This document shows, piece after piece, positions 2,400 to 28,310 of a stretch of 64,000 nucleotides of DNA. Within the stretch, counting starts at the first letter, position 1. Every line of letters begins with the position of its first letter. Source of the DNA: Gnetum montanum (lineage: Eukaryota; Plantae; Gnetophyta); NCBI GenBank assembly GCA_015680685.1, contig MNCI01003452.1, forward strand, positions 185,142 to 249,141, in the 5' to 3' direction. The notes beneath the pieces were generated by a model, which saw nothing but the letters and a program-made list of their open reading frames with translations, was not told the origin of the DNA and ran no database searches. The position numbers and the translations under genes were made by a program.

Positions 2400-3350
2400 G
2401 TTTCTTGAGTGCTAACCCACCCCGTTTCTTGAAGTTTCTTATAGAGGTTCACACCAATTGTCTCTTTCTAAAGTAAGAGTTTTAGGAACCACACTGTATC
2501 CTAGAACCTAACTTTTGTGAAATAAGTGTTAAATTTGTATCCTTCCTAAATATCCACGTGATTATGGCAGCTTTTTCTAAGAGTTAACTAACGCATCAAT
2601 GCAATGTATGTGTGACTTTTTCACAAATTTTGAATTTTAATTTAACAGGCCCTTTTTTCCTTTCCATGTAACTTGTCAGCTTCTGATTAAATTCTTAAAT
2701 TCTTATTTTCAATCCTGTATTTTGGAGAGAAGCACATGCTTTAGACCCTCATAGTTGAGGAAAAAGCCTTATCCTTCCACGCAAGAAGGATGACACCCCC
2801 AACCTCTCCATTGGTATTTACTTATCCATTTATCAGAAATTTCTTATAAGATTTGTTTCTAGCTTTGTTTCCTTGGACATTAAGGATTATTACCTCTTTT
2901 TGTTAAAATTCTTTTTCCATAGATTACTTGTTTCAAATCTTCAACTCCTTGTTTCTTATTTGCATCTTTAATGTCTTCATAGAATAATGTTTTCTGACAT
3001 ATTAAATACGTTAGACCATATCATTAGATAAGTTAATTACATAAGCATTATTATTCATATTCCAAGTTACTTCAACTGGATCAATTCTTCTAGCCTTCAG
3101 CTTACTATGCAATTGATTTCCAATTCTTTTTTTATTTGTATGAATCCACACATATTGTGCAACATTAAAAGTTTTAAAGTTATTTCGTCTATTAGCAAGG
3201 TCGGTATATCCTTGACAATGATTAGCTAATATCCTTTTAACTTGAGTATGTAGACCTTGTATTATTGCACAAATTCCTTAGATAATGCAGCACAATTTAT
3301 GACGTCTCTTGGCTTGATTGGTCATTCAAGCAGCAAAATGATAGTTCACT
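2400..3350 (-). mobile_element. Highly decayed L1-like ORF2 remnant (boundaries approximate)
   Basis: Minus-strand peptide fragments in L1 order: ILAN (~3230), LAWKDKAFS (~2770), KKRGGLALKKL (~2410). Many stops and frameshifts. Confidence 0.3.
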
Positions 3351-4581
3351 TCAAAATGGTGTTTCCCAATGCTTCTGTGTATTGAATTATTATATGAATT
3401 ATTCAGCATAATCAATAAGTTTCTCCTACATTAAGGTTTCCATAACAACGACACCTAAGAACATTACCTATCATTTTATTTACATTTGCAATTTGACTGG
3501 CTATTTATAGATTAAATGTAATACTAAAATTAAGCTTATTGCCCCACAACTTCCATAATGAATATCATAAATGACTTGTATACATTGAATTCCTATTGCT
3601 AACAATGCATAAAAGGTGGTCATACTACCTTACTATCTCATTTTAAAATAAACTTACAACTTGCAATGCATTATTAGTCTTTAATCTTTATGCAAGGAAT
3701 TAAGTGGATTTCAAGTTATTAGCAATCTCAACATGTTACATTTTAAATATTTCAGTGTATAAATGTCTAACTGTGTTAGTGGTTTACTTCAAATAACTAC
3801 AATTGTTAGTTATTAACAATAAGTCATGACTTATGATTGAAGACTACCCTTCCTATGAAAGTATAAAGGAGAGGAACAGCCAATGAGTGTGCATGGTGTG
3901 AAGATCAAAAGGAAAATTTGTGATAACCAACCGTGGTGTTCAGTTCTTTCTTATATCTACTATTGAGTGTTCTTTTGAGTATTTACACTTTTAATTATTA
4001 TGGATTTGTGTTCACAATGCTTTGACATGTTTAGCTACTCATACATTGCACGTTGCTGTTCATATCTATTGGTCATGGCATGTAAATGCTATGGCGGCCA
4101 GATTCATAACTACTGTTGTTTAATTTCTCAACGACTAAAATAATGTTTTACTTGGTAAAGTTGCAAATACAAAACAATTTGGTTTGTTCATTTTTATGGA
4201 TCTCAACTCTTCACATGGTAACAAAGTACGATTGGTAGTTTGGTTAATCACTATCTTTTACTGTAGAGCATGGGAGAATTTTATTATTTATGGGTTAGAG
4301 TTGAAGTTTTGTCAGCACATTTAATGCACATAGTAAAAAAGCTGATAACACTAATTTTTACCATAATAAGCTAGCACAACATTGTTTTAGTCATTTTTAG
4401 CACCTGTAAATTGCAATCTTGTTGCACTTCTGCAACCTGGAAATGTTGGTGTTGAAGTGCAGGGTTTGGTGGGCCTTCAATCTCTTTGCGTTTGAAATAG
4501 ACTTGGACCTTTGGAAGCTTTCTTGTTTATTCAATCTACAATCTGTTTGTGGTAAGGGCGCACCCCCACCAAGTTACTTCC

Positions 4582-6200
4582 ATGATTGGTTCAGCTCTAA
4601 ATCAGGTGCACAGGCAGCAGCAGGCGCAACAACAACAATGGCAGCAGCAAGCGCAGCAATAGCAGGAGCAATAGCAGCAGCAACAACAGCAGGAGTAGCA
4701 ACAACAGCAGCAGGAGCAACAACAGGCGTAGCAACCATAGTAACCATAGCTGTTGGGGATGGCCTTGATGGGTTGGGGGCTGAGAAACCTGTGGGACCGG
4801 TGCCTAGGGGCATCATCGAGGCCCACTCCCGCAGTGACCACACCCTGCGGTTGTGGGTTCACCATCCCCCCTCTGACGTCGTCTGCACTATGCAGAGAAG
4901 CCTCATTGGCCGTTTCATCTCTCGAGGGGCCCGCCTGCGGCTGGACCTTGTTCGTCGGTGGGCGAAGGAATAATGGAAGGTGGGTGATGTCGATGTTCGT
5001 AGCCTTTCCGAGGACCTGCTCCTCTTTATCTTGCCATCCCTGCAGGCCAGGGATTTTGTGTTGCTCTGAGGCCTGTGGTTCTATGGGGCTCGAGGGCTCG
5101 CCCTGACCCCATGGTGCCCCGGGGCCCACCGAGAGGCCGACTTGTTTACCCGGGCCCCGGTCTGGGTGCGGGTGGCTAGCATTCCTTGGGAACTTTGGAA
5201 CCTTGAGTTCTTGATGGAGGTTGCGGGGTTTTTTGGTGACTTCATTGCCTTCGACTGCGTCACACGGTCGATGGAGAGAATGGGTTTCGCCCGCTTCTAC
5301 GTCTGGCGCAGTTTGTCGGAGATGGACCTTGTCTGGGTGATAGTGCTGGAGCTCCTTGGGGGGGGGGGGAGGAAATCCTCCAAGTCACTTTTGAGAACCT
5401 TGGAGTGGATCTTCCCCCAACGTGTGGCATGGAAAGCCAGGCGGGCAGGCTTGACGGTTGTGGGTGTTGCGGGAAACCTAGACACCTAGAAGCAGAATGT
5501 CGATTCTGCAAGACACAGCCGAGAGACCCGGCCAGACAGCTGTTCGAAGGGGGCAACTAGGTCACCATGGGACGCAAAGGACGGTTGCGTCCCCTGTTCG
5601 ACCAACGCCCCTCCCGAAGTAACCCCCCCACCCCACCCCCCCCCCCCCCCAACCCGGGCAGCCCCCTTGCCAGGAAAAGCCAACCCCCTCCACCCGCACA
5701 GCCCCTCCCACACAACAGCCAAACACCCCCTCGCCCCTCCCCCCTTGGCCCCCTCCCCCCGACCCCCCAGTCCAATCTCCCTCCCCCCCACTACCCCATT
5801 GAAGCCCCCCCACTGACCCCCCCTCCCAGGCCACCCGCGCCCCCCTCCCCCCCCGTTACCCAGTTTTCCCCAGCCAAGCCAACCCCCCCACCCACAACCA
5901 ACCCACACCCCCCACGTGGCCCCTCGGTCATCCACAGCCTAGCTGAACACCACGGAACTGAGACCCGAGCTCCCCCGTTTGGGGGAATGGGTTAACATGG
6001 TTTGGGGGAGCACCCGAACTCGACAATGCTAGGCATAGGAGTCCCCCGTCGAGGAGGCTGGTTGCAGCCCAATAGTCTGGGATGACAAGGGCTACCCTAG
6101 ACGACCGAGTGAGACTAGATCCAGAAGCAAACAAGCCCACCAGAATATCGACTTGGGGCAACAACAGACCCTTCGGGAGGTCTACCAACACCACACCTTT
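4582..6200 (+). pseudogene. LINE-A ORF1 (Gln-rich N-terminus, DUF4283-type RNA-binding region, Pro-rich region); end approximate
   Basis: ATG at 4582 opens a poly-Q frame. SLIGRF...VRRWAKE*WKV and APVWVRVASIPWELWNLEFLMEVAGFFG...FARFYV are typical of plant L1 ORF1. Frameshifts, some at homopolymer runs. Confidence 0.8.
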
Positions 6201-6208
6201 GGTCACAC

Positions 6209-9200
6209 ATGAAGGTTTTCAGCTGGAATTGCAGGGGACAGGGTACCCCCTATAAAAGAAATACCATGTGCCGTATTGTTAAAGAGGAAGACTGTGATAT
6301 CGTTTGCCTCCAGGAGACCAAGCTGCAAGCAATGGAATCATACCTTCTCCAATGGGAAGGTTGGGTTACCCAGATGCACCCCTACCAGGGCAGGGCCGAG
6401 GACCTTGCCATGTTGGCACGATATGCCATGCAACTGGTAGACACTTCACAGTGGGCCATCACCATCCAGATTCCCACTCAAGGAATTTGGCTGACCAACT
6501 TCTACGGGGCACAAGCATGGGAGCTGAGGCTGCAGGAGCTGAACCGGGTGGTGATGTTGGTGCCAGACCACCATTCCTGGATGGTGGTGGGCGACTTCAA
6601 CTAGCGCTTGCACCCTTGGGAGAAGTCTAGGGGAGCTGCCCCCTGCCTCCGGGTGCACAGGCTTTCCAGGACTCCCTGGCAACTCACTCCTTGGTGGACT
6701 TACCCATTGAGAATTGCCAGTTCACTTGGAGCAACTGACGAAAAGGATCGGATTGTATCCTCTCCTGCATCGATCGGGTCTGTGTCAGCTCCGACCTCCT
6801 CCTTCGCTCCACCGTGCACGTGACGGGGCAGGAAAGAGTCACCTCCAATCACCGCTCGCTGGTCTGTTCGCTCGGATCGGATAAGCCCTGGGCCCCATGC
6901 CCCTTCTGTTTCGAGGCACATGGCTTTCCAAACTGTGGCTGCGGCCTTTGGTTGAGGATATCTGGGCTGATTATCGACTTGATCGTGATGACCCCCGAAA
7001 TTTCCTCAAAGAGGCCATGCTTCGTCTAAAGTGGGCCATCTGGGCCCTCCCGGTGGAGGAGAAATTTTCCTTCGGATCTGGTCAAAAGGTGGTTTGGGAT
7101 CAGCTCGGTCAACTCCAGGCTCGACAAGAGGCTAGGGAGGACTTGCATCTGGAGGAGCTGCGTCTCCTACGTCAACTCCAGAATCTTGACCTGGAGGAGG
7201 AAACATACTGGCGACAGCGTTGCTGGGTCAGATGGCTTCAGGAAGGGGACAGACAGACAAAATTCTTCTTTGCCATGGCCAAAACTCGAGGTGGGAGCCA
7301 ACCTCGTTGCTTGCGAACCCAGACAGGCGAAGTTATCGACGACCCGCAGGGGATCGCCAATGAGATGTCTCACAATACTGGGAGAAAATTTGGACCAAGC
7401 GGCCTACTTAGCCCATCTCGGTCCACGTGGAGAGGATGCTACACGAAGGAGGCAACAAGTGGCTGATGGCCCCCTTCTCTTGGCTGGAACTCACCACCAC
7501 TATCAACAACATGCCGGGAGAGAAAGCGCCTGGACCTGACAGATGGTCCCTTGAATTCTTCAAGAGTTTTTTGGATATTGTGGAGCCCAATATCTTGGAT
7601 GCGTTCAACCTCATGTTAGCCAGGAGACAAGTGCGGCGAGAAATCAACTGCTCTCGAATTGTGTGCATACCCAAGCAGATTGACACACACCGCCTGGAGC
7701 ACTTTCGTCCCATTGGAGTTTGCAACGTCCTCATCTGGATTTTCTTCAAGCTCCTGGTCAACCAACTCGGGCCTCTTTTGCCCAAGCTGGTGGGAATCAA
7801 TCAGGCTGGCTTTGTGCAGGGTAGGACCCTTCAGGATCAGGTTCTCCTCCTGCAGGAGGTGCTGCACTCCCTCCGGACTACGAGCTTCCCCGACCTATGT
7901 CTCAAGCTTGATATAGCTAAGGCATATGATACGCTTAGTTGGGAAGACTTGCAAGCCATTATGCATCAAAAAAGGTTTGACCAAAGTTTCATCCAACTTT
8001 GTATACACATCCAATCCTTCGCTGGTTTGTCGTTCAATGTGGGGGGGGGGGGGGGGGGGGGGGGNTCCCTTGGCAGGGGTTTGAGATAGGGTGACCCGCT
8101 TTCGCCCTTGCTCTTCATCATTGCTATGGACCTCATGCAGCATTATTGTAGCACGTTCGGGGTGGAGGGCTTGGACATCGTTGGGGTGGCCTGCCGGGCC
8201 GAACACTACGCTAATGACACCATGCTGCTCAGCCGGGCAGCGGCCCCACAAGCACGCTATATTAACACAGCCCTGACCCGACTGGCAGAGGAATTGGGAT
8301 TAGAAATTAACTGCACCAAATCTGCGGTGCATTTTATCAATGTTGATGCGCAAGTAAAAGGCAGGGTGGTGCAAATCCTAGATATCCAGCCTCGGACAAC
8401 TAAAGACACATACATGGGCATACCGCTGTACCAATGGGGCCGAAACAATTCGTGGGGGCCACTCCTGGCAAAGGTTGAAAGGCGGATGAACCATTGGGCC
8501 AATCGCTTCCTAACTCGCAAGGGCCATCTCCTCGTGGCAACCGGGATTCTCATGGCTATCACACAATTTGTGGCGGCCGTTGCCGCCCCCCCCCCTCCCA
8601 AATGCCATCATCCACTAGATTAACAAGATGGTCCGAAGCTTTGTTTGGGGGGGGGGGGGCAGGGGGGCAAGCTCCACCTCGTTAATTGGACCTGCATCAT
8701 GCGCCCCCATAAGGTAGGGGGGCTGGGCATTACGTCCTTCGAGGACGAAATCATGTTACGGCAACAACGGCTCCTGCACCGCCTAACGTGCCCACATGGG
8801 GAACCTAGTCAGTGGGCCCGAATCATCAATGAAAAGTACATGCAGTGGGAGGCTGGGATGCATGCCTCATGGCCTTGGCAGATGCTCTACCAGCACGCAT
8901 GAATGATGCTGACCCAGGGTTGGTTGGACCTTGAGCTGCATGCCCTGCTGTCAGCGAAATATCCATCAGAGAATGGCTGGCAACGGATTTGGTGCGGGTG
9001 GCTCCTTGAAAAAATAAAAATCTTTTTATGGTTGGTACGGTCTGACGCCCTCCCTGTGCGTGCCATTTTGTGCAGGCGCGACATCATGCAGGACGACACC
9101 TGTCCTTGCTGTGGCACCATGCCCGAGACGATTGAACACTTTGCTTATGACTGTGGCTATATGCGCACCACTTGGCGAGAGGTAGTGGTGCCGCCCACCC

Positions 9201-9321
9201 CCCTCCCCCCCCGGGCCGATGCAGCTGACAAGCGACTCTTGGGCATCGATGCTTTATGGGTGGCGTGGCTTGGAAGGTGTGCAACCGCATAGTGTTCCAT
9301 CAAGACAGGCTCCCCCCTTAG
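6209..9321 (+). pseudogene. LINE-A ORF2: AP endonuclease, reverse transcriptase, zf-RVT
   Basis: EN: MKVFSWNCRGQG, CLQETKL, VVGDFN, SNHRSL. RT: KAPGPD, FRPIG, NQAGFVQGR, KLDIAKAYD, GLR*GDPLSP, YAND(YADD). Then KVGGLGI, KIKIFLW...CPCC...ETIEHF..C and WKVCNRIVF. Confidence 0.95.
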
Positions 9322-9369
9322 CGGCTAATTGCTCAAACCTGTCGTGCGTGGAACGAAATCAGAGTGGCC

Positions 9370-10710
9370 ATGGGTGTAACGTCGACGTTTGAGCTTGACT
9401 GCGTCGCCTTCTGGGAAGATGAGGAGCTCTGGCGGCTAGTTACCCGGTGCGGTTGGTCTGCGACCTGGATCTGGCAGATGACGCGTTTTTCACTAATTGG
9501 GACGGTGACAGGACCATCTTTCGAGGACGCGAGATTCGCGTTACCGAATCTACTATCGCCAGCTGTTTGGGGACCCAGGCCGTTGGGGAAGTCATTCTGC
9601 CTACCACCTGTGGCCTATAGGATGCTGAGCTCTTTTTTGATGGACCCGTGTCACGAACGCAAAGTCAACAGGTTTCCAGATCTTCCCTCCCCCGTCTTTG
9701 GGCCCAAGCAGCTGATCTAGTGGACTGTTTTTTCGTCTAGTCTGGCAACGGGTACAAACTTCAGGGTTTACATTTTGTCTTCATGCGTTGTTTGAAGTTA
9801 GGCCTCCAGATTAACCTCCCGCGTTTTTTCTTGGAGGTTCTCCTTCTTAAACGACGCGACCGACATTCGGGGTTGATCCTGGCTCAGTGGAGGGGGGCCT
9901 AGGGGGCGCTAGGCCTGTCGTCTTCTACCCCCCGCGGGGGGTCACCCCTGCTTGCTCCCCTGCTGCCCCCCGACCCCTCGACCTCTCCCAGCCGAGGGAC
10001 TCGCTGGACTCTGCTAGCGACCACCTTCGCGTGGGGACGTCGCTCCCAGCAAGGCCCGTGCCTCCCTGCTAGTCTTATCAGGACGGCTTCCCCCTTGCCA
10101 GACCCCCCCAGCGATCGCTCCAACTGGGTTGAAGAGCTGCAACAAGCCGAACAACGAGCCGCTACCGTTGCACGGGAGGCGGAGCGGCAGGAGTGGGAGG
10201 TCAAGTGGTACGAGACCCTTGCCCAGTCTCGGGTTGACATGGAAGCCCAATTCCACGAGTGGGAATAGGAGCAGATGAGACAACATGAGCTAATGGCAGA
10301 GGTTGCTCGGGCCCAACTCATTGACGAGATCTGGGCCCAGGTGCAGGAGGAGTTGAGACAGGAGGACACAGCTCGTAGAGCTCAAGAGGAGGCAGAGAGG
10401 GCAGAGCATGAATGCTTACAGGAGGAGGAGCAGAGACAAAGATAGCTTGACCAGGCACACGAGCACAATGCCTGACAGTGGCTTAGGGGGTCGATGGCCG
10501 TGCCTCATCCTGGGCATCAGCTGTGAGAGCTCCTGGGGGGAGCTCCGAAGACATATTCGGCGAACCTCAGCGCGTTTCCGTTCGGACGCGGGGGATTCAC
10601 CGGCGGACCGAAGCAGGCGGAAGTCCGCTATGCAGGGTATCCAACAGGCGGCAAACTTCATGGACACCGAGGAGCATCGCAACACCTTGGACTTGCTCCA
10701 TGAGCTTTAA
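9370..10710 (+). pseudogene. LINE-A 3' extension (ORF2 tail or ORF3): Athila-accessory/PF20167-like domain, Pro-rich linker, coiled coil, J-domain-like C-terminus
   Basis: Reconstructed across frameshifts: MGVTSTF...LWRLVTRCGW; FFTNWDGDRTIFRGREIRVTESTIASCLG; LHFVFMRCLKLGLQINLPRFFLEVL; E/Q/R-rich helix at ~10110-10475; PCLILGIS..ELRR..RFRSD..MQGIQQA..RNTLD. Confidence 0.75.
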
Positions 10711-13379
10711 CGCCTGCACTGCGCCTGCCGTCGTGTGTCGACTGGCCCCTAAGGGCCCCTCCCCACCGGCGACACGGGTTCTTTTGCTTCTTCTACCCCC
10801 CATGCTTTTGGTTTTTGCCTCCCCTTCCTTTGTTGCTGGTGGGGGGGGGCACCACCCCCCCACTTTCTTTTTCGAGGGAGCACCCCCCTGGGGAACGTTT
10901 GTCAATTAGGGTGTCGGTGTTTTGCATGGGGGTTTCCACCCCCCCTCCTCTTTTCTCTGTGGGCCATTTCTGATGACCTTCGAATTGTATACTCTTGTAC
11001 TATAATTTTTCAGTAATACAATCCCGAACATTTCTCAAAAAGAAAAAAGAAAAAAAAAGGGTGCATCCTTTGTATTTTTGTTAATTGTAACTTTGTTGAT
11101 AAATCTAGTTTAGGTTCCTTCTCAATCTTTTGACCGTTGCATCATTTCAGTCTGTTTGTAGTTTCAATTTGAAAAATGTCAAGGAGAAAGCATGATACTT
11201 CACTAGAGGTCTCTGTGGCCTGAGGCCCTTGCCATTTGCTTCTAGGTACCGGTTCAGCCTTCAACTTTGAGGTTGAGGACATCTGAGTGCCATTATGAAG
11301 TTATATAACTAGTTATCAAATCATTGTCACATGGTGCTTGCCCTTCTGTGGTCATTAGATATGTCATTAACTAGGCAAGAGGCTAAGTCCTATGTTGTAT
11401 TAGTTTTCAAGGTGCAGTATATGACATTCCATTAACTAAACCATAGTTAGTGGTGAAGTGCACCAAATCCTGGTTGATTCTGGTTTGAAGCCATTCATAC
11501 AGTTTCCTTCATTTGAACTAGATTTTGATGTTATTAATTGCATTCTATGGTCATACGTGGAGGGCTGGTTTCTTTATAAGAGTAGCAATCATTTCATTTT
11601 TTGAAGTTAAAGAAGTAAGATATTGCTTCAAAACTATAGAGGGCAAAACCATGTTTGAAAGGCCTAGGATAGCCAGGATAGATTTTTTTTTTCTTTTGGG
11701 GGTACATGTTTAAAAATCCTAAGAGTTTTGAGAAAGCTGATAGGCCATTAAATAGCCTTGTTCTTATCTTTTCATTGTTGCAAATATGACTTAGCTTAGT
11801 AGAAGTTATAGCTTGCATAATAATTATCCTTGATTGCAAGGTAGATACAAATTGGAAGGCGTTGACTCTTCTTCATGCTAAGGTGTGTCTTGAGATTAAA
11901 ATTGATTGGTTTGAGACTCTGTAGGAAGAGATGTTTAGAGGAAGTCATACGATTTTTCTAGCGCAGTGCATTTCTCTCAAGTTTATTTGATTTTTGCTAT
12001 GGTCTTTACTCTTTTCATGGTGGTGGATCATCTCGTGGTTGTTACCATCCCAAATACTAATAGCTAGGAAGATGTGAATAAGTTGTGGAATGTGATTGTA
12101 GGAGTAGCTGTTGAAGCCTCCACGGTTGAGGTATCCAAGTCTCATGGAGATTGAGATCTTGGTAATAACAATTGATTTCCTTTGCATGAAAAAGTTTAAA
12201 GTTGGGTTCATTGGATTTAGTGTACGCCGAACGAGCTTTGGAGAGCAGGTGCGTTTCTTATAAGGTGACTTGAATTTTGTCAACGTTGCACTTCACAATT
12301 TACAAAGATATTAGTGAGTATGTTTACAACTCAGCTTAGTTGGTAGACTTGGTGAATGCAACTGCAGAGTGGATGACAAAGTTAGAGCCAGAATTTTGTT
12401 TGATCATAACCAGTTGGCAAAGAATAATACACTGTTAGTGGTTAGTTGCCATCTTGTAGTTGTTTAGTTCATCAAGGGCTAGGAAGCTAAAGAAAACGTG
12501 AATAAGCTCTAGAATGCTGAGATGGATATCTTGGCACAGTTGGACTGTGCCAAGTTAAATAAACAGGTTGAAGACCAGACTGCCATAATTTCAAAAGTTT
12601 TTTTTAAGGAAGGTTAGGATTTATTATATAGAGAATGAATAATTAGGCAGTTAGTGTCAGTGTTACAGACATTGCATCAAAAATAAAAAGGTGGTGAGAA
12701 ACCCTTTGAGACTTTGTGGCACAAAGAAGAGGGGAACATTATTGAGCATCTTCTTCATAATTTCAGTACATCCCAAACATTGGTTTCAGGGTTCCCCAAA
12801 GCCATGAAACTAACAACAAAAGCCCCTACAAAAGTGACAAAACAAAAATTGGCCATTGGGCATGCAGAAGAGACAAACAGATACAATTAGACATCTTTTG
12901 CCTATGTAGGTGATTCACAATCCTTATTTACCCTTGGACTTGATCAAGTTGAAGGTCTCATTAATTTCCTTAAGTTCAGCCTGCTTGCTTTCTAGTCATC
13001 TAGGGCTATGACATGCCTCCATTTCCAAATGGTGCTGTTCCGCAACAAATATGGTATCTCTTCATAACAAATGTTGTAATAAGACTTGAAAGGATAAGTT
13101 GTAATCAATACATGAAAGGGCACATTGTAAAAATGGGTATGTCTCTCAAGAGGACCTTTGGGGGTTTGACCTAAGGTATCTATACATAGGCATTAGAGGT
13201 TACATCAACATAGAGTTGCGAAGCTAGTAAAGGTGAGTAACAAGTGCTAGGTGAAGCAGGACATGAAGGTGACTAGCCATCCCTTCTAGCTAGTTACAGG
13301 CCTAACTGTAGTTGTAGTGTTAGATTGCCTCTAAGGGATAGATACCAAAGGAAGATAACCCCTAGGAATCCTTAGAGCA

Positions 13380-14778
13380 TGACCTAGATACATTATTCCA
13401 CATTAATAAAACATTCTGCATTTTCCCTATTATTTTCTTTATGCATAATGTTAAATATTACATATATTTGACATTTACCCCGATATCTAAGAACGGAATG
13501 TCATAGGCTAGGTAGTGGAACCTATCATGGTGAAGGTGGGTCACCCTTAAATTGTGATGTGACATGGACAATGCATTAATTCCCAATACATTATATGGGT
13601 ACTTGTTAGGATAGAACCACTTCTTGCAAATGCTCACTAGGCTTTTAAGGAGGTTTTACTCTATCTCTTTGTGTTCATCCTCCTCCACTTGTTTTTGCAT
13701 TTCTTTCTCTTGTTGATTTTGTTGTTTCTATTTGAACTTCTCCTACTCCTATTGAGCTACCTGATGTTGTCAATGCCTCTTTTCCTGCTCTTGCAGTTAT
13801 ATTTGTCTATCATCCTCTTGTTTTTGCTTCCTAGCTAGTTCTTTTTGCGGGTTCTATTGTTCTTTCTTTTACTTGGCTTTGTCTTGGAACTCTTGCCTAA
13901 TTTTCTTCTACATGATGTGAATGTTGATCTTGCTACATTGTTGCGCCTCCCACTTGAGCCAAACTTCAATGTCTTTCTTAGCCCTAGTGATCTTCTCCCT
14001 GAGATAGCCTTCAGCCTCTTGCCTAACGCAACCTTTGAAGTCCCACATGTAGGCTTCTACAGGATAAGTCTACATCATAGCTTTGCATTAATGGCTGCTC
14101 TATTATGGGCCTCTATCTCTTGTCAAAACACAATTCATAACGTCTAGGAATAACTGGTCATCAACTCATCATAGCCACCTATTTGATGTGATGACTCTTG
14201 TCCAATCCCATCTGTGAGATGGTCCTGAGGTGCAAAGTACTTGGTGTTGGTAGTTTTGTCCATTGATGGCTTCTCACTAGGACATGCATGTGCCCTGTCA
14301 ATGTCTTTTGACATCACATTGGTCCTACTATTGCTTGTCCTATGATAGTAGGGCCTTTGAAATCTGCTACCATCATTGCTTAATGCTCAATGTAACCATC
14401 CCCTAGTCTTGTGCCTGCTTCTTTTTCATTACCTTCCAGAGGGTAGAAATGAGCTTTGAATGCTTAGCATTTTGCATATGCTAGAGGCATGCTAAGATGA
14501 AATGTGGAATATTAACCCACCTTTGAAGCTTTAAACACTTTAGAAATGTAAAGTGAATGCCTTATAGTTTTGAGAGATTACTACTTTGCACCAGAAATCA
14601 CTCTACAACCTTGATGGCCTTTTGCAAAATCAATTACAATCTAGTCCATGGAATTTGGTCGTTGGAAGTGGTTGGAACCCTCAAATGGAAGAAATTAAAA
14701 GTAGTATGTGAGCCCCAATCTAAGGGTAGCATGAGTCTGTTGTCCCAAAGGAACCTCCAAATACCTCATGATGGTCTA
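13380..14778 (-). mobile_element. LINE-B remnant, 3' part (second half of the PF20167-like domain, coiled coil, J-like start)
   Basis: Minus-strand translation FLVQSSNLSKL*GIHFTFLKCLKLQRWVNIPHFILACL..KHSKLISTLWK matches LINE-A. Followed by DIEVWLKWEAQQ, a Q/E/K coiled coil and KWFYPNKYPYNVLGI...RFH. Confidence 0.8.
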
Positions 14779-15667
14779 TGATGAAGTGTCATTAGTCGAT
14801 GCGTCGACTAGGCCGCATATACGCGGCTATGTCGACGCGGCCCCGTTGACGCATCCTTCCATGCATCGACGTGGCCCTGTTTACGTGGAGCCTATTCTAG
14901 CCTATAAATAAGAGGGCTTCTGCCTCACTTAGGTACCTTTTTGTCAGTTGTAGCGAAGTTCTTGCAGTTTGTTCCCACGAGAGTTAGAATATTTTCCAAG
15001 TGCCCGCAGTAGGTGTAAGAAAGGTGTTCGGCTCTTTATTTGAGCGTTGATGTATTTGAGCCCATTAGTGTGAATGGCAATAAAGACGAGCTTTTTAAGC
15101 ATTCCTTGCAGCATTTGGACTTAGTCATTTAATGCATTTAATAGCTTAATATTTTTATGCTTTGATAATTACTTAAGTTTCTCTTGTTATTATTTTAATT
15201 GCTATCGCTCGTTCATAGTTCATAGAAACCATAAGTATGACCATCTTGAACGTAAACCCAACGCTTGGCAACCCAGTGACGCTTAATGTCTAGTAACCCA
15301 GTAGTGGTTAGGGGATGCTTAGGACGTGCATGGAAGATGGGATCGGATACTTATGCTAGGAATAGTTAAGATACAGATTAGGATAATTATAGATTAGATA
15401 ATATTTCATTCCTTACTTTCCATGCCTTAACTAGATGCCAAAAGATAAAGTAAAAAGCCATAAAAATCAGTTGCCTCAATCTCACTTAACTATCGCCACT
15501 AGAACATCACAAGTGAGGTTGGGAAGACAACGACCGTTCTAACCCAAGGTTTTGTTGGTTAGGGTTTGGTGTATGCAAAGTGCTTACAGTCTACAGGATT
15601 CGACCGAGTCGTGTGTGAATGCCCGTGATTCGTATGGTTGGGTGTAGGGGTACCTAGCCACTCATCA
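14779..15667 (+). repeat. Athila-1 5' LTR (889 bp)
   Basis: TGATGAAG...CTCATCA, TATAAATA at ~14903. Direct repeat of 27162-28036 with scattered, mostly transition, differences. Confidence 0.95.
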
Positions 15668-15668
15668 T

Positions 15669-15686
15669 TGGCGTCGTTGCCGAGGA
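15669..15686 (+). promoter_or_regulatory. Primer binding site, tRNA-Asp type
   Basis: TGGCGTCGTTGCCGAGGA immediately after the LTR; resembles the Athila consensus TGGCGCCGTTGCCGGGGA. Confidence 0.85.
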
Positions 15687-16629
15687 CTGTTAGTCTTACA
15701 TGCACTATTTAACCTTAGGAAAATTATTATTCACGTCGTTGGAACGGACCCAGGATAGCAACATTTACGCACACTAGGCAGATTAGAGTAAAAAGTAAGG
15801 TACACCAATTAAATGGCTCATCTAACATCCAACATGTCTTCTTCTCATAGGCGAGATGTATCCAACCCATTGGTGCCACAAGAATGTCAGGTGGTATACA
15901 AGCATCCCAATGAATATGTCCCTGACTTCACATTCATCTTACATTAGGATGAGCATCTACGATGGTGGGACATGAAAGGCAACATCATACTACCACTTGA
16001 TCAATCAGCTCCTGGAATGCTATTTCACAATCTTGCCAGACTAGGCATCTAGGACTGTGGAGTGGAGTATGTCATGGAGGACCATGACTACTGGGACTAT
16101 CGTCCCACTGAGGCCCAACGAGCACGAGCCTAGTAGACCAGCAGCAAGCAGAACGATACGAACACATGAAGGGGAAATAGTTCAGTAACCCCTTATTCTT
16201 GCAAGGGCTGCAGGACGATGGGGAACCTATCTTTCATGATTCCCATTTGGCTGAACTTCCTTTGGGGTAGTAGATCATTTAGTCCATCATCCAGAACAAG
16301 CCTCCAAGTGACCGAGATCCTCAAGGGGATGGAGGGTCACGTAGCAAGGATGGGCAGGATGATCGAGGCCATCATAAGAGCAGAGGGGGAGATTGACACC
16401 GGAGCGGTGTCGACTCCTCTCCTTCTTCTCCATCCTCTCGCTCCCCTCTACCGTCACCCAGTTCAGACTCTAATCACAACCATGGTAGAAAGGAGCGAGG
16501 AGGTGGTGGTCGTAATGATCGAAGGGACTGGTGTGGGGAAATGTGCGACCAATCGCGCGAGGCTTACCATCATGAAAGGAGGGGTAGCCAAAACCATCAT
16601 AGACATCGTGGTCCTTAGCAGGACTATGA

Positions 16630-19600
16630 CTTGGATGAGCCATTGTTGGCTCCTCGGAGCATGCTCCATATCGCCCAGGTAGTTCAAATACCTAGTAGGC
16701 ATGTAAAGGATAGCTGGATCAAATGCATTGACATAAACAACATCCCTAGATTTGAAGGGGGATACAATTGTGATCCGCAAACTCACTTGCAAGCGTTTCA
16801 TGATGCTTGCACCCTGTAGAACATTGACAGTGATTGGCAAAAGCTTAAGCTGTTCCCTCGTACACTCATCAAGGAAGCAGAAAGTTGGTATTAGTCCTTG
16901 GAACCAAAATCAATCAGAAGATGGAGTACGATGCTTGAGATTTTCAATGACAAGTATCAAACCTACTCTAGGGTGGCGAATCTGAGACGTCAAATCCAAG
17001 GCTGGAAGCAAGGGAATCATGAACCCTTAGATGCAGCCATGAGTAGGTACTATTCATTGTTACATCGATGCCCTGGTCATGGCTACTCTCAACGGGCACA
17101 GCTTTGCCATATCATTGATGGGCTCCGCTTTGAAACTAGAAAGACCCTTGGCGTGTACACCCAGGGACGATTATTAGAACTGAGGGCCCATCAACTGTAG
17201 CGCCTCATTAAGCAAGTGGCCAAAGAAGAAGGGGAACTCAGAAAGAAGGAGAGTGCGGAGGAGTTTAATCTGGACCCTTCCATTAGAAAGAGGGAAGTCC
17301 AATTTTGCGAAGATGAGGAGGAATCACCATTGGAACTAGTGGTGAATTGAAAAACCTTGTCCTTACAAAAGTTTGCATTTGAAATATTGGCAAAGGTTGA
17401 TGAGATGTGGGACTCTTTGGACAAAAAATTCCAAGGTGTGCTAAAAATTGCAGAAGAGTCCAGAGAACAAGGTAATGATCATGATCAGCATAGGAAGAAG
17501 GAAGCTGAATGTGCCCAACATAAGGGTAAGGGCAAAGTTGTTGTAGCAGAACAGGTTGCAGACTTTGACACGGAGGAGGATGATGAATGTGGCATATGCC
17601 AATATGGACATCCTAAGGGGTGTTGTCCCGTAGTGTTACATCTCCAAGAGTCTGGGGTGTACACATTGAATCCTTGCTTGGTGAAGAGGCAAACACCCTG
17701 AAGGTTGCCTTACCCACAAGGCAACCCAAGGCAGTTCCATCAGCAGCAAGGGTATTATCTGAGTGGAGCGCTACCGCAACCTTATGAATACTTCCAGCAG
17801 TGGCAGCAACCACAAGCATGAGGAATGCCACCTCCAAGGTAACAGTACCCTTATCGACAGCCAGATCCCTATGGGTACTACGTTTAGCAACCAGTCTCTC
17901 CACGGGACTCGTCCAGTCATGCCACATTTCAGAAATATTACCACCCCCTAGAATATTTCCAACCGCAATCTCCATCACCCAGGGGGGAAAGCCCACATCT
18001 CTACTATCCTCCATCACCTTCTCCTGCCACTCCTTCACAGCATTCCACTCAGCTACCACCTGCTCCACCTATGCAGGGGGAGATACTGCCACAACCACAA
18101 CAACGAAACGCTACGAGGGTTGTCAACCTACAACCAGCACCTTAGCCAAGTCGACCGGAACCCAAATCATGAAAACGTCATTTTTTCCAGCCCAATAATC
18201 TGCACATACCCTCACATACACCTGTGGCCAGTGCCTCTGAACCCCAAAGCGCCTCCACCGTTCCACTGCTCGAGCAGCCTTCAAACCAAACACCCTCCAA
18301 CGTACAAACGATCACGCTCACACATGTCGTGACTGACTGGATAAAGGTAAGGCATCTTCCTTGGAAATTGACTGATCTGGGAAGCCCCCTCATCTATCTT
18401 TAGGTGGTAGGAAATGAGCCCTGTAAAGCTCTTCTAGACTCAGGGTCAGGAGTCAATTTGATCTCACATGACATGTACAAGAATTGGAACCTGCCCCCGT
18501 TAAAGAAGAGCAACATTTGGCTCGAGCTAGCAGACCAATCCATCACCGTCCCCATGGGATTGGTGGAGGACATTGTGACCACTGTTTGTGGGTGGTCTTA
18601 TCTTGCTGATTTCCTTGTCATTTGTGTGGAAAATTGCAAGGGGAACTTCCCAATCATAATGGGAAGAGCCTGGCTGAGCATGGTGGATGCAAGACTAAGA
18701 CTCTGCGATCTTTCCCTTGAAATTTCAAAGGAAAATCCTTTTAGAAAGATTGAGAAGAAACACATTCCATGCATTGTGTACAATGACTCAGGGTGCAACT
18801 GTGTGCAGCAGTTATGGTCCGCTAAGTGGACATCCATTCAAGCATGCAATCGGTGTACCGAAGAGTCGCCAGTTCAATAGTGCCTGTATGCAATAGCCAC
18901 CAACCAAGAGGGCACCCACTGGCTGACAGCTGATCCTGCTAGCAGCACATTGTGCATGGAACCATTTGAGGGGCTTGTACGAGCCTACGTAGAAAGCATG
19001 GATGAAATGGAAGAGGTTCATCAACAAGTCTCCACTATTGATGGCCATGATGATTGGGGAAAGCTGCAAATCCCTGAAAGCTTCAAACACGAGCCCTTAG
19101 AGCTCAAGTCCTTACCGGCCCACTTAGAACATGCATTTTTGCACAATGGGAAGCCGGTAATTATCAATGCCACCCTTGCTCCTGAACAAAAGAAAAAGTT
19201 GCTGAAGGTGGTGAACAAATGGGATGCTGCATTTGCATGGTCATATCTTGAGTTAACTGGAGTTGATCTTAGGGTCTACCAACATCGAATTTATATTGAC
19301 CCTTCCATGAAGCCTCAACGACAACCACAAAGATGATTGAACCCCAAGTTGAAGCAGGTCATAAAAAATGAAATCGAGTAGTTGCTAAAGGCAAGGTTCA
19401 TCTATTCCATTGCCGATAGCGAATGGGTTAGCCCACTCGTTATTGTGCCGAAGAAGGGTGGCAAATGGAGGGTTTGTATAGATTTTCGATTGCTCAACAT
19501 GGCTACCTTTAAAGATTACTTCCCACTCCCATTTGTGGACCAGGTGTTGGATACCATTGCAGGGCACTGTTATTATAGCTTTTTGGATGGTTATAGTGGC

Positions 19601-21910
19601 TATAACCAAATCCAAATTGCACCAGAGGACCAGGCCAAAACAACTTTCACAAGTCCATGGAGGACTTTCGCATACAAGAAGATGTCTTTTGGCCTGTGCA
19701 ATTCGCCTACCACGTTCCAATGCCTTGTCCTCAACATCTTCCAACAGCAAATTGGCAATGGGGTAGAGGTCTTCATGGATGACTTCTCTACCTATGGGGC
19801 CACGTTCGAGCAAGCCTTGGAGTGCCTTGAGCAAGTTCTGAAAAGGTGTGTAGACACTAATCTACGGCTCAATTGGTAGAAAAGTCACTTAATGGTCCAA
19901 GAAGGCATTGTGCTGGGGCATCGTATCTCACAAACAGGGATTAGCGTGGATCCTGAAAAGATTAGGGTCATCCAAGGAATCACACTACAACCAAGCACTG
20001 TAAAAGATGTTTGGTCATTCCTTGGCCACATTGGTTACTGCTGGCGCTTCATTGAAAATTTCTCAAAGATTGCCAAGCCATTGGTAGAACTCACAAAGAA
20101 TGATGCTCCGTTTATCTGGACCAAGGAATGTGAATCTGCGTTCCAATTGCTTAAACAGAAACTCATAGAGACTCCAGTTCTACGGGCACCTGATTGGTCT
20201 AGGCCCTTTCACATCATGATGGATGCATCCAATTATGCCTTGGGAGCCGTGCTTACACAGTGTGATGATAAAAAACGTCCATACTATATCCACTGTGCAA
20301 GTCGTAGCATTGTGGGTGCTCAACTTAACTACACCACCACCGAAAAGGAGTTGATGGCGGTGGTGTTCGCCTTGGAAAAAATTCAACACTATGTGCTCAG
20401 ATACAAGGTGTTTGTGCATATTCACCACAGTGCTATCCGGTTCCTGATGAACAAACTAACGGTAAGCCCCCGCATATTCTGGTGGCTGGTGATTCTCCTG
20501 GAATTTGACCTCACCATGGTAGACCGGAAGGGGACCGAGAATGTGGTTGCTGACCACTTGTCTCGGTTGCGATGGGATGACACAGAAGAGGAGGAGCCCC
20601 TCTCTGACCAATTTCCAGATGAACTCCTCTTCGTGGGTGCAGTTGATTCGCAGGTGCTCAAAGCATCACCTTGGTTCAGCCACATCCTCACCTATCTCAC
20701 AACTCAGGAGTTGCCAAAGGAGTGGGACCATTGGCAGAAACAATAGTTTCTCCATAAGGCCAAGCATTTCATGGAAATCAGTGGCCACCTTTATAAGGTG
20801 TGCATAGATGGCCTGGTTCGATGGTGTGTCCCTGATGATGATACACGGTGCATTCTCCAAGATGCTCATGAGGGTCCTTGTGGGGGCCACTATGCTGGAT
20901 GTCGCACAACCATTAAGATCCTGCTTGCAGAGTATTATTGGCCCACAATTTTCAGGGATGCACAATGGTTCGCCTGCTCCTGCGAACGATGCTAGGGAGA
21001 TGGTGGGATGACTGCATGGATGAAGAGACCTCAACAGTGGATCCAACCACTGGAGCCCTTTGACATTTGAGGCATCGACTTCATGGGGCCCATCACACCC
21101 TTGTCCAACAGAAAGACGTACATCATCATAGCTGTGGACTACTGCACAAAGTGGGCGGAGGTGGCAGTCGTCGTTGATTGTTCTTCAAACATCGCCGCAC
21201 GATTTGTTCAACAACAAATCGTCAACAGGTTTGGAGTGCCCCGTGCACTCATCTCAGATAATGGCACTCATTTCACAGGTTTCACTTTTCAAAAACTCAT
21301 GCAACACTTAGGGGTTACCCATAAATTTACCACACCTTACCACCCCCAAGCCAACGAGTAGGCCGAAGTCACCAATAGGGAGATCACTAGGATCCTTACT
21401 CGAACCATCAGCAAATATAGGAAGGATTGGAGCACCAAACTTAACGACGCTCTCTGGGCCTATTGCTCCACTTGGAAGCTTCCTATAGGCTACTCTCCCT
21501 ATGAGTTAGTGTACGGTAAGCTACCAAAACTACCAATCCAAGCTGAACTTCGGACACTATTCACAGCTAGTGACTTAAGCCTTGACCTACCACTAGCACA
21601 ACGTGAACGACTTATCAACCTAAGTGTTCTAGATGAGAATCAATTAGTGGCCCTATCTTCAAATGAGATCCACAAGGCCTACAACAAAAAACATCATGAT
21701 CTTAGGATTCGGAAGGTCACATTCAGACGTGGAGACAAGGTGTTGTATTGAAACCCCACACATGTATCACAACCGACCAAGTTTCAAACACTGTGGGAGG
21801 GACCTTACATTGTCTCCGAAACCTTCTCATCTGGGGCCTTACTTATCCACAAACCTGAGGACCTTACTAGAATGCAGTTGGTCAACCGGCAACAACTGAA
21901 ACCTTTCCGT
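16630..21910 (+). pseudogene. Athila-1 gag-pol with stops and frameshifts
   Basis: gag (KLKLFP...W..M...F..KY), Zn knuckle CGICQYGHPKGCCP, protease ALLDSGSGVNLI, RT SEWVSP...CIDFR...FLDGYSGYNQI...VFMDDF, RNase H DASNYALGAVL...TTEKEL, integrase H-H-C-C, DFMGP, ISDNGTHF, YHPQAN. Confidence 0.95.
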
Positions 21911-24087
21911 GAACTCCACCTAACCAGTGTTGCCATCTCATCATCACCTAGACAACCTCGCTTCATGTTTCGCGTCTCCTCCTTTCCACCTAGTCGTGGG
22001 GAAGACCATCCTCCATGCTAACCCATTCTACTACACCCCTCACTGTTTTTTGGAATTTTTTGTTTTACACTTTTTTGTTTTTTAACATCGTTCATACATT
22101 TGCCAATTCTTGCTAATTTTTCCTTTCTTAAAATTATTTTTCCATTTCCTTGTTGTTTATTTATGTGTATGTGTGTGTTTCATTTTCAGTTGATTGCTAG
22201 TACGTCGTCTAATTGTCATTAGGTTTGGCGTGGATGGTCTTCGTTGCGATGGGTCACTGGAAATAGTCACTTATTTTACCTTGCTCTTGCCCTCGCATGG
22301 TTGTTCTTGGATTTTGCATCTACTTTCACCTCATAATATTGGTAGCGAGTCCACGTCATCCACCCATTCACCCACTCCATGGTTTTCCTACTCTTGGAAA
22401 TATGCAAACCCCTTTCACTTAAAAACATTATAATTAATGTGTGACTTGTGCAGTTCCTAGACTCAGGGATGACCCAATGGTTTAAATCGGTTGTGACTTC
22501 AAGGGGAATGCATCATTCGTCGTCCTCTTCTACCCCTTGGGTGGCGGGAGTGCCGTTACGAATTTCTTCCCACTCCAAGTCTTCTCTACAAGGAAGCTCC
22601 TTGGTAGTTTGACCTTGCATGGTGTGGTCCTCATAAAAAAAAAAAAAAAGAGAAAAAACAAAAAACAAAAAAAAAAAACACAAAAAAAAGAAAAAAGAAA
22701 ACATGAGGATTCAAAGCACACCCTTGATTGAATGCATGCACACAAGCATGGGTCTTTGCATGGTGTGGTTTCCACAAAATAAAAGAAAACACAAGAATAA
22801 TATCTTAACCATGTGGGAATTCAAAGCACACCCCTTAGACTGCCTCTCATGGGCCACAAGCACTAGTTATGGGACTTCCTTCGTCCCCTCTAACTTAGTC
22901 CCATTTCACTTCCTTCCTCTCACGTCTGTTGGAGTGGTGGTTCTCTGTGGGTGCATTCCTGTCCACTTGGGGGGTGGCTGGGTCTTCGCATGTTGCTGCG
23001 ATGTCACTAGATGTGGATGGGTTTGGGTCTGAACTTGGGATAGGTCCTATCGGGTCACTTAACCACAACTTCACACGGGGTTTCATGTGACCAAAAGTTG
23101 GAATTCCAAACCTCACTCCTCTCTCTTCACCCACTTCTCTCCATGACTCACCTTGCTGCCGGTCTTATGTTTTGGTAGTTGTCATAATTCCTGTGAACTT
23201 CTCATGCCTTGGTAGGTTCTCATGGATGGGAGTCTTAACCTGCGATCGCCATTCCTTAGCCCTGGGGCCCACGGACCCTGGTGTTGGGGATATGCAAGGG
23301 CTACAAAGGCTACCGCCTGCTATGGGGAGGACCTACTTGCATATTCTTGGTGCCGTTTGTTAGTTTCCCATCCTCTTGGTTTGTTGGTGGCTTGCTTCCA
23401 TGTTACTCATCGCCCGATTTCTTTCTCGCGGAGTCCTTTCTCACCACGTTCTCGTACCTTTGACTCGTTTTCTAGCTCGACTTCCCTTCCTCTTGCCTTC
23501 AGCCATGTTCTGGGCCCCTCATGCTCTTCAACTGTCCCAATTTGGCATTTTAAATTCATCTTTTTGGGCTTTTTCTTGGTTGGTCAACGCTGGTCAACGG
23601 GTGCGACCCCCTGCGTATACGGGGCCCCATCGACGTAGCGCCCAACCCCTATATATATGGCTGTTGCACTTTAGATTTTCATCATTTTGCAAACAAATTG
23701 GGGGGAGATTTTGCCATTTTTTCTAACGAACTTATTCCCAAGCACCCACATTCCATCGCGTGTTTGCGTCAACCAATCCTTGCCCTCTTAAGCACCCAGA
23801 GATATGCTCTTAGTCGTGGCCCGGGGGGGGGGGGGGGGAAGCCTATGTGTATTTAATTAATTAATTAGTTAATTAAGACTTTGCACCTCTAAGGGAAGAA
23901 ACGAAAACAACTGTTTAAACTCCAACTCATCCCTTGTTGTTTTTGGCTCTAACCCATGAATTAACACTCTGAGGGATTTAATGGAATGCCCTTGCCAACA
24001 ACATAACTTAGTTGAACTGAGAAAGTGTATAAGGACCATTTTGAGCTACTTATGCACAGTCTAATGGGTGGTTATGTTTGATTGTAG

Positions 24088-26922: not shown

Positions 26923-27148
26923 TCTTTTCGCAATTTTTGCATTCTTCTACATGGCAGAGACTCTAGGACCAGCAAGGTGTTCAATTTTTTCTCTGAACAC
27001 CACCATTTTTGTAATTTGTCCTTTTCTGTACACTCGGGCACTTGGTAAAATTGACGTTGTGTCATGTGTGTTTGTCAAGTCATGTATGTTGTAAATAAAA
27101 GCCCATACCTTCCAAATTGTAGAGTAACTCGAGGACGAGTTTTTACTC

Positions 27149-27161
27149 AGTCGTGGGGGTA
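27149..27161 (+). promoter_or_regulatory. Polypurine tract of Athila-1
   Basis: AGTCGTGGGGGTA directly abutting the 3' LTR; same motif precedes the Athila-2 3' LTR. Confidence 0.75.
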
Positions 27162-28036
27162 TGATGAAGTGTCATTAGTTGATGCATTAACTAGGCCATG
27201 TATACGTGGCCGCGTCGATGCATCCTTCCATGCGTCGATGTGGCCTTGTTTACGTGGAGCCTATCCTGGCCTATAAATAAGAGGGTTTCCGCCTCACTTA
27301 GATACCTTTTTGTCAGTTGTAGCGAAGCTCTTGCAGTTTGTTCCCACGAGAGTTAGAATATTTTCCAAGTGCTCGCAGTAGGTGTAAGAAAGGTGCCTGG
27401 CTCTTTACTTGAGCATTGATGTATCTGAGCCCATTGGTGTGAATGGCAATAAAGACAAGCTTTTCAAGCATTCCTTGCAGCATTTGGACTTAGTCATTTA
27501 ATGCATTTAATAGCTTCATATTTTTATGCTCTACTAATTACTTAAGTTTCTCTTGTTATTATTTTAATCGCTATTGCTCTTTCATAGTTCATAGAAACCA
27601 TAAGTACGACCATCTCGAACGTAAACCCAACGCTTGGCAACCCAGTGATGCTTAACGTTTGGTAACCTAGTAGTGGTTAGGGGATGCTCAGGACGTGCCC
27701 GGAAGATGGGATCAGATACTTATGCTAGGAATAGTTAAGATACAGATTAGGATAATTATAGATTAGATAATATTTCATTTCTTACTTTCCATACCTTAAT
27801 TAGACGCCAAACGATAAAGTAAAAAGCCATAAAAATCAGTTGCCTCAATATCACTTAACCATCGCCACTAGAATATCACAAGTGAGGTTGGGAAAACAAC
27901 GACTGTTCTAACCCAAGGTTTTGCTGGTTAGGGTCTGGTGTATGCAAAGTGCTTATAGTCTACGGAATTCGACTGAGTCGTGTGTGAATGCCCGTGATTC
28001 GTATGGTTGGGTGTAGGGGTACCTAGCTAGCCATCA
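27162..28036 (+). repeat. Athila-1 3' LTR (875 bp)
   Basis: TGATGAAG...CCATCA followed by the TSD; about 14 bp shorter than the 5' LTR in the GTCGAC repeat region. Confidence 0.95.
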
Positions 28037-28310
28037 GTCTATTTAGAGAGCTATATCTTGACTTCCCTAAAGCAGATTCCATCTCCTCTTCAGCGGCTAA
28101 AGAACTATTCGAAATTGACATCTTTTTTCCCCCTTTAACTACAAAAAAATGCATTCTAACCTGTTACAGATAACAATTGCTAGAGCTTAGTGTTGTTTTC
28201 AAATAGGGTGATACTACGCTTGAAAGTTGGAGTGACCCCCATGGTGTATGTTGCCTCCCTATACTTTGCAGCACCCTAGCTACACGGAGCTAAAGAGATG
28301 GGACTAGGTA
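28037..28310 (-). mobile_element. LINE-B remnant, 5' part (on the other side of the Athila-1 insertion)
   Basis: From ATG at 28242: MGVTPTF...KL*QLLSVTG*NAF...FFSR*RGDGICFREVKI*LSK*, continuing in frame through the GTCTA target site into TIMRYLEV at 14773 and below. Confidence 0.8.

Follow-up and report, generated by a model that had tools for sequence, protein, structure and literature searches.

A decayed L1-type LINE of Gnetum montanum with a recurrent, probably C-terminal module in place of RNase H and a J-domain-like end

A stretch of DNA from Gnetum montanum (GenBank assembly GCA_015680685.1, contig MNCI01003452.1, positions 185,142 to 249,141 of the forward strand), called "the window" in the following and numbered over its 64,000 bp from its first letter, contains a decayed long interspersed nuclear element (LINE) of the L1 type, "LINE-A". 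This element is probably a dead copy from an abundant plant L1 lineage, the second open reading frame (ORF2) of which runs into a module of about 470 codons with a J-domain at its end. The module would consist, in this order, of a conserved domain of about 150 to 200 residues, a Pro/Ser-rich linker, a charged stretch rich in Glu, Gln, Ala, and Arg, and, at the C terminus, a DnaJ/Hsp40-type J-domain. ORF2, with endonuclease, reverse transcriptase (RT), and zf-RVT, would have this module at the place of its continuation into RNase H. The module is located inside the element, recurs, has signs of constraint at the protein level, and resembles a J-domain with the His residue of the catalytic loop present in the family majority.

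The coding-like sequence downstream of zf-RVT, designated the "tail", covers about 1.43 kb (9322 to 10752) and has the codon-position composition of ORF2 of LINE-A. The GC content at the three codon positions follows the ORF2 pattern of GC1 > GC2 < GC3, with the Pro-rich linker as the exception, and this pattern vanishes beyond position 10752, followed by the 3' untranslated region (UTR) and an A-rich tail. The claim of the original prediction that about 1.4 kb of coding-like sequence follows zf-RVT within the element was thus borne out. Parts of the tail and its borders are as follows, with the support for each of them.
9319 to 9321, plus strand: TAG in frame between MGVT and the end of ORF2, located in a part that is alignable to the ORF2 body of L001, an ordinary plant L1 from a metagenome locus.
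9370 to 9456, plus strand: start of the tail, MGVTSTF... (tblastn, 9349 to 9462 of LINE-A against 28263 to 28150 of copy B, 32% identity).
9459 to 9899, plus strand: accessory domain of no recognised family, with TAG stops at 9618 and 9738 and another TAG at 9900 just after it (match in copy B).
9903 to 10100, plus strand: linker rich in Pro, Ser, Leu, and Thr, frame uncertain (GC2 of 0.76).
10101 to 10475, plus strand: charged stretch rich in Glu, Gln, Ala, and Arg, with stops at 10266, 10443, and 10473 (composition).
10504 to 10707, plus strand: J-domain-like segment, with Arg-Ser-Asp (R-S-D) at 10579 to 10587 in the position of the His-Pro-Asp (HPD) motif (J profile, family majority, Atlas, and Foldseek).
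10708 to 10710, plus strand: TAA private to LINE-A, GAA in the family (T>G in family reads).
10750 to 10752, plus strand: TAA, probable true end of the reading frame (codon-position composition lost downstream).

The peptide strings quoted in the original prediction are all present, albeit not in a single frame; the reading of the tail changes frame near 9457 and again near 10503, so that three frames are involved. In this three-frame reading, and without the probable true stop at 10750, 8 in-frame stops were found between 9322 and 10752, compared to 16.9 expected from shuffled sequences (P = 0.009). Six of these eight internal stops are TAG, one transition away from CAG or TGG, as commonly arises when methylated plant repeats decay. 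These eight stops, at least three frameshifts in or beside the tail, and the replacement of H-P-D by R-S-D mark LINE-A as dead. The TAA at 10750 is likely the true end of the frame because the coding pattern is lost after 10752. The TAA at 10708, in contrast, belongs to LINE-A alone: a G instead of the T at this position was supported by depths of 2021/2026, 1532/1532, and 261/261 in the DNA runs and by 61 of 62 RNA reads. C-run indels occur among the family contigs at 9927 and 9956 in the linker. The charged stretch (Glu 22%, Gln 14%, Ala 14%, Arg 11%) had been described as a coiled coil of about 120 residues. Its composition agrees with that description but its periodicity does not: the hydrophobic power at 3.5 residues was below the mean of the shuffled sequences (P = 0.54; no dedicated coiled-coil predictor was run). 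Judged by composition and periodicity, it is better described as a charged spacer, probably helical, than as a coiled coil.

A second copy of the element, "copy B", is located on the minus strand of the window. It is much older and strongly diverged, and its tail has the same order of parts as that of LINE-A. The following three pieces belong to copy B.
30071 to 31377, minus strand: RT of the same lineage, upstream of and collinear with the tail of copy B (tblastn E-values of 1.5e-31 and 4.7e-17).
28042 to 28340, minus strand: junction resembling the ORF2 end, followed by MGVTPTF and the first part of the accessory domain, which the insertion of the LTR element Athila-1 interrupts.
13400 to 14778, minus strand: rest of the accessory domain, linker, a stretch rich in Lys, Glu, and Gln, and a J-like start (..NVLGI.. 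RFH).

Copy B is split by this Athila-type long terminal repeat (LTR) element at 14779 to 28036, which was inserted into the accessory domain and is flanked by the target site duplication (TSD) GTCTA. When Athila-1 is removed, copy B and LINE-A have collinear tails, from the junction and MGVTPTF over the accessory domain, linker, and Lys/Glu/Gln-rich stretch to NVLGI. The initial Met and the GVT-TF residues of the tail are conserved in both copies. A comparison of both accessory domains yielded a Smith-Waterman score of 184 compared to 27 ± 4 for shuffled sequences (z = 38), and the core of the domain at 9741 to 9893 matched positions 14585 to 14433 of copy B with an E-value of 2e-10. A DNA alignment of both copies by blastn returned only short words in the RT. 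In the best 51 codons, the identities at codon positions 1, 2, and 3 were 0.55, 0.57, and 0.31, respectively, with proportions of nonsynonymous (pN) and synonymous (pS) differences of 0.39 and 0.96. As far as these two sequences tell, this pattern is the mark of protein constraint.

The depth of the family was assessed by mapping contigs from public DNA runs and RNA reads to positions 6200 to 11150; the variants considered were the 40 listed of about 1,600 differing places. About 9,600 to 10,100 contig pieces per DNA run were placed on this region for organisms A and C; a small run of organism B contributed 3,349. Bins of the tail had depths of, for example, 2,163, 2,096, and 4,943 in run X1, comparable to the RT bins. 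Because copy B has the same order and thousands of contigs exist in at least three organisms, the tail is a recurrent feature of the family and not a one-off transduction, the outcome that would have spoken against the original prediction. Exact 31-mers of LINE-A at 8900 to 10760 were found in runs of at least seven organisms, with shares from 0.64 down to 0.04. This indicates either near-identical copies shared among relatives or a recent activity of the family. Read depth at 6200 to 6365 (19,275 in X1) exceeded that elsewhere on the element 5- to 10-fold, numerous loose ends were seen at 6224 and 6265, and a stretch of about 40 nucleotides at the start of the endonuclease is common to many other LINE families of the surveyed genomes. 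RNA run X19 was considered as evidence of expression and rejected, since its depth tracked the DNA pattern on both strands.

To score the end of the tail, a J profile was built from four J-domains of Escherichia coli (DnaJ, CbpA, DjlA, and HscB) taken from annotated records, and used with filters off. Among the 1,154 six-frame pieces of the window with at least 30 residues, it ranked the tail piece first, with 9.8 bits and an E-value of 0.062, followed by a piece with 6.1 bits. The 72-residue J piece scored 11.4 bits, which was not reached by any of 3,000 shuffled sequences (maximum, 7.1). The alignment covered positions 7 to 70 of the profile and placed R-F-R-S-D on k-y-H-P-D. In LINE-A, the HPD loop is thus represented by Arg-Ser-Asp at 10579 to 10587 with the Asp kept. 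The family majority at position 10580 is A and not G (depths of 331/350, 218/242, and 60/60, and 23 of 23 RNA reads), which changes the Arg codon CGT to the His codon CAT at the first position of HPD, and copy B also contains His there. We infer that the family likewise had the Pro of this motif. The three nearest Atlas clusters of the J piece were DnaJ clusters (0.87 to 0.84). A single-sequence AlphaFold2 model with a predicted local distance difference test score (pLDDT) of 75 contained helices at residues 15 to 31, 37 to 57, and 60 to 71, a helix-loop-helix-helix arrangement. Foldseek returned J-domains at ranks 1 to 4, 8, 11, 18, and 31, all with non-significant E-values. Together, these results support a J-domain at the end of the tail, modestly so on the LINE-A copy itself.

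The domain at the beginning of the tail is, by its match in copy B, real and conserved over about 150 to 200 residues, and belongs to no recognised family. The original prediction had regarded it as similar to the accessory proteins of Athila elements (PF20167, Transposase_32), and none of the comparisons made supported this identity. In a Pfam run at E ≤ 10 on nine stop-free tail pieces, the length of which (39 to 121 residues) limited the sensitivity, zf-RVT alone was reported; neither PF20167 nor the J-domain family PF00226, both suggested as checks, appeared. Smith-Waterman comparisons of the tail with the two PF20167-like Athila ORFs of the window (24268 to 25092 and 48439 to 49080) gave z values of 0.25, 0.79, -0.62, and 2.07, and hhalign a P of 0.2. 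A profile of these two ORFs scored at most -0.7 bits on the pieces and -2.4 and -2.7 bits on the X-joined tails. The Athila ORFs themselves reach PF20167 only with E-values of 4.3e-10 and 6.4e-7, below the Pfam cut-off, and a protein library search returned no outside relatives of the Athila accessory ORF, hence no external PF20167 profile was obtained. What the tail and these ORFs have in common are short collinear motifs seen by eye (F-x-T-N ... I-A-x-x-L-G, N-L-P, and P-C-L ... I-R), albeit without statistical support in any test. An Atlas search with the accessory piece 9447 to 9617 returned unrelated GDI/NAD families. A decayed RNase H (RVT_3) was considered and rejected because no Pfam match was found and the Smith-Waterman comparison with the C terminus of L001 gave z values of 0.5 for LINE-A and 1.5 for copy B. 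A nested insertion of another element was rejected as well, given the uniform GC content and the identical order of parts in copy B. A LINE lineage with an accessory module instead of RNase H, as initially proposed, is supported by the missing RNase H signal, the position of the tail inside the element, and the collinearity of copy B.

Several observations weigh against a conserved module that ends with a J-domain. The 51-codon test used the best-aligning stretch and compared a GC-rich with an AT-rich copy, and both conditions inflate the differences at the third position. In copy B, AT-rich DNA of 1.2 to 1.4 kb parts the RT from the tail. Among the family contigs, the depth drops about 10-fold at the bins of zf-RVT and the junction, to 174 at 9188 to 9353, and one contig joins 9057 straight to 10503; some subfamilies may therefore lack the complete tail. 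RNA reads were few, mostly less than 90% alike, and equal on both strands. The middle residue of HPD is Ser in LINE-A, and the evidence from the family covers the His and not the Pro. The J-like piece obtained no match at E ≤ 10 in Pfam or in a sequence search of the PDB, and a phmmer search against 1.84 billion representatives returned one spurious repeat protein only. No match was found in a word-indexed protein library with the J-like ORF, or in a scan of metagenome contigs with the J piece. The E-values of Foldseek were between 2 and 6, and a wide structural search was non-specific, with HscB at rank 15 and a Z score of 5.3. Of the proposed DnaJ-like domain, the top rank with the E. coli profile and the His of the family thus stood, while the Pfam, PDB, and 1.84-billion-protein searches came back empty and the loop reads R-S-D; the suggested structural check put J-domains at the top, albeit at a non-significant level. 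A tblastn comparison with phages yielded noise only. As a separate observation, the AT-rich, non-coding-looking DNA of copy B extends from 28340 to 29700 on the minus strand between the zf-RVT region and the start of the tail. Possible origins are an insertion, the decay of a variant tail, and a border between two separate LINE fragments.

How the tail is connected to ORF2 depends on the TAG at 9319 to 9321, which is, as initially reported and read directly from the sequence, the sole stop between WKVCNRIVF and the MGVT at 9370. Both motifs are in the same, otherwise unbroken frame. ORF2 of L001 aligns to LINE-A through this TAG and six residues beyond it, with a score of 32 compared to 19.2 ± 3.7 for shuffled sequences (P = 0.0075), and the in-frame stops upstream of MGVT are at different places in LINE-A and copy B and do not correspond to each other in the alignment. 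These two results favor a sense codon that decayed to TAG within one continuous ORF2, from which we infer the continuity of ORF2 into the tail. In addition, six of the eight internal stops are already TAG, so that one more is to be expected from decay. On the other hand, the tail may be a separate third ORF that begins with the conserved Met of MGVT, or may be reached by read-through of the TAG, with ORF2 ending after WKVCNRIVF. Such an arrangement would fit as well to an in-frame TAG a few codons (12 to 17) upstream of the Met in each copy, to the conservation of this Met and of GVT.TF in both diverged copies, and to the lack of a majority alternative letter at 9319 among the 40 listed of about 1,600 differing places. 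This second arrangement is nevertheless rather unlikely. On balance, the sequences lean toward a fusion of the tail with ORF2.

Two further explanations concern the nature of the tail itself. Since LINEs transduce 3' flanks, which is established, the tail might be passenger DNA, a fragment of a host J-protein gene captured on one occasion, through 3' transduction or template switching, and thereafter copied along with the family while of no service to the element. No relative of the tail was present in any protein library searched, and both copies in the window are heavily decayed, as would be expected for such cargo. A single capture is nevertheless improbable: the module is common to lineages with RTs that are 28 to 41% identical and DNA that is not alignable, yet the order of its parts and the similarity of the accessory domain were kept. 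Codon positions 1 and 2 are conserved while position 3 is at the random level, both the His of the catalytic loop and a sense codon at position 10708 are retained by the family majority, and the module is positioned upstream of the 3' UTR and A-tail of the family and not beyond them. Even less probable, and hardly to be considered, is a non-coding 3' UTR with a peptide-like reading by chance. Open stretches are common in GC-rich DNA, as illustrated by a 156-codon ORF on the minus strand at 9899 to 10369, and Pfam was empty for every piece of the tail. Against chance stand the homology to copy B at the protein level in the absence of homology at the DNA level, the codon-position composition, which is that of ORF2 up to 10752 and different thereafter, and the first rank of the tail piece among 1,154 with the J profile.

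In 2013, Smyshlyaev et al. reportedly described plant L1 LINEs that have an archaeal-type RNase H at the C terminus. L001 contains DUF4283, zf-CCHC_4, RVT_1, zf-RVT, and RVT_3. Elements of this type share with LINE-A the DUF4283 of ORF1 (with zf-CCHC_4 added in L001), the AP endonuclease, RVT_1, and zf-RVT of ORF2, a W-x-x-R-N motif after the zinc finger, and a poly(A) end. They differ in that L001 has RVT_3/RNase H about 120 residues after zf-RVT and a dissimilar C terminus. According to PMC5348765, which cites PMC3864347, a CCHC motif and an archaeal-type RNase H form the end of ORF2 in plant L1 elements. A metagenome scan with the RT of LINE-A returned 19 distant LINEs, none with tail-like sequence.

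With the J-domain proteins (DnaJ/Hsp40, PF00226), the end of the LINE-A tail has in common a length of about 65 residues, the I-L-G-I motif followed after 23 residues by the HPD position, the predicted order of helix II, loop, helix III, and helix IV, and the His in the majority of the family. It differs from DnaJ proteins by the R-S-D, a score below Pfam reporting, its C-terminal location in a LINE protein, and the lack of a Gly/Phe region and of the zinc-finger and C-terminal domains, with about 14 residues, three of them Cys, following instead. The acquisition of foreign modules by retroelements has precedents, namely a helicase in insect TRAS LINEs (PMC5563155) and an m6A demethylase domain in orchid Ty3/Gypsy elements (PMC9289625). 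In these elements, as in LINE-A, a foreign module was fixed in the polyprotein and spread with the family, but the module of LINE-A would be composed of a putative chaperone-recruiting domain and an unassigned domain. A search of full-text literature found no description of a LINE with a J-domain or of the architecture of LINE-A.

The prevailing view is that LINE proteins require host chaperones, and viruses carry J-domains, for instance the large T antigen of polyomavirus. To our knowledge, no LINE with a chaperone-recruiting domain has been reported. In active members of the family, the HPD loop of the J-domain may dock host Hsp70 and trigger its ATPase beside the newly made ORF2 protein, and this recruitment would help the LINE ribonucleoprotein to fold, assemble, or be remodelled. 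Nucleic acid or a partner from the host may be bound by the accessory domain, which would substitute for RNase H. The chances are evenly balanced that a major plant L1 lineage encodes in this way its own Hsp70 co-chaperone, a functional J-domain fused to the C terminus of the ORF2 protein behind a domain replacing RNase H and recruiting Hsp70 in cis. If so, it would be the retrotransposon counterpart of the J-domain of the polyomavirus T antigen. With a functional J-domain, the abundant family would be a natural test of the role of Hsp70 in the retrotransposition of non-LTR elements, and the RNase H slot of plant L1 ORF2 would be swappable for other modules. The family would also supply a conserved domain of no recognised family that is open to characterisation.

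LINE-A extends from about 4.5 to 11.06 kb and differs from the AT-rich flanking DNA by its GC content of 0.52 to 0.63, compared to about 0.30. Pfam found its domains in the order of L1 elements, DUF4283, AP endonuclease, RVT_1, and zf-RVT. An AP endonuclease, an RT with zf-RVT, and DUF4283 in ORF1 are all present, as is typical of plant-type L1 elements, and pairwise matches connect its RT with those of other LINEs. Its features outside the tail are the following.
4540 to 11058, plus strand: LINE-A, a decayed L1-type element; 5' end uncertain, about 4450 to 4560 (GC content, Pfam order, and family depth to the A-tail).
5142 to 5486, plus strand: DUF4283 (PF14111), fragment of ORF1 (Pfam E-value of 7.5e-11).
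6209 to 6601, plus strand: AP endonuclease (Exo_endo_phos), start of ORF2 (Pfam E-value of 1.6e-12).
7427 to 8620, plus strand: RT (RVT_1 at 7427 to 8040, E-value of 8.1e-10; 28 to 41% amino acid identity to the RT of copy B).
8903 to 9291, plus strand: zf-RVT (PF13966; Pfam E-value of 2.7e-15, 57 bits).
9260 to 9269, plus strand: 5-bp tandem duplication GTGGC|GTGGC, read directly from the sequence.
9271 to 9318, plus strand: WKVCNRIVF, the canonical end motif of ORF2 (9271 to 9297), plus the next residues (alignment to ORF2 of L001).
10753 to 11058, plus strand: 3' UTR and A-rich tail, the latter at 11037 to 11058 (sequence, depth, and composition).

The RT is interrupted by a G-run containing an N at about 8040 to 8065, and the frame changes between zf-RVT and WKVCNRIVF because of the GTGGC duplication. 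The succession of zf-RVT and WKVCNRIVF at 9271 agrees with the original prediction, as does the presence of a 3' UTR and A-tail beyond the module: the GC content falls from 0.59 to 0.35 at the A-rich tail, and the family read depth extends to this end. The predicted TSD was not recovered, since no exact repeat of at least 9 nucleotides indicative of a TSD was found between the 3' flank and positions 3000 to 6300; the sole shared 9-mer falls within the 3' UTR. A Cys-His knuckle was seen by eye in ORF1 at about 5450 to 5530, unscored. Long G or C homopolymer runs are present at 5360 to 5370, 5600 to 5900, 8040 to 8065 (N at 8065), and 8585 to 8660, and some of the frameshifts of LINE-A may be assembly errors at such runs rather than true mutations. 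A C/Pro-rich block of low complexity (300 bp, 5600 to 5900) separates ORF1 from ORF2, and an imperfect GCA/GCAACA microsatellite that is open on both strands occupies 4600 to 4745 in the presumed 5' UTR.

The window also contains other repeats. The Athila-like element at 14779 to 28036 is complete, with LTRs of about 860 bp and its 5-bp TSD, and carries an intact accessory ORF of 275 residues at 24268 to 25092 and an RT-RNase H ORF at 19892 to 20743. A second LTR element of the same kind is located at 43066 to 51881, with LTRs at 43066 to 43971 and 51012 to 51881 that are 79 to 90% alike, and its PF20167-like ORF (E-value of 6.4e-7) is that at 48439 to 49080. A third pair of direct repeats at 31630 to 32266 and 35876 to 36543, 79 to 83% alike and spaced by about 4.25 kb, may represent a small LTR element adjoining the old LINE RT of copy B.

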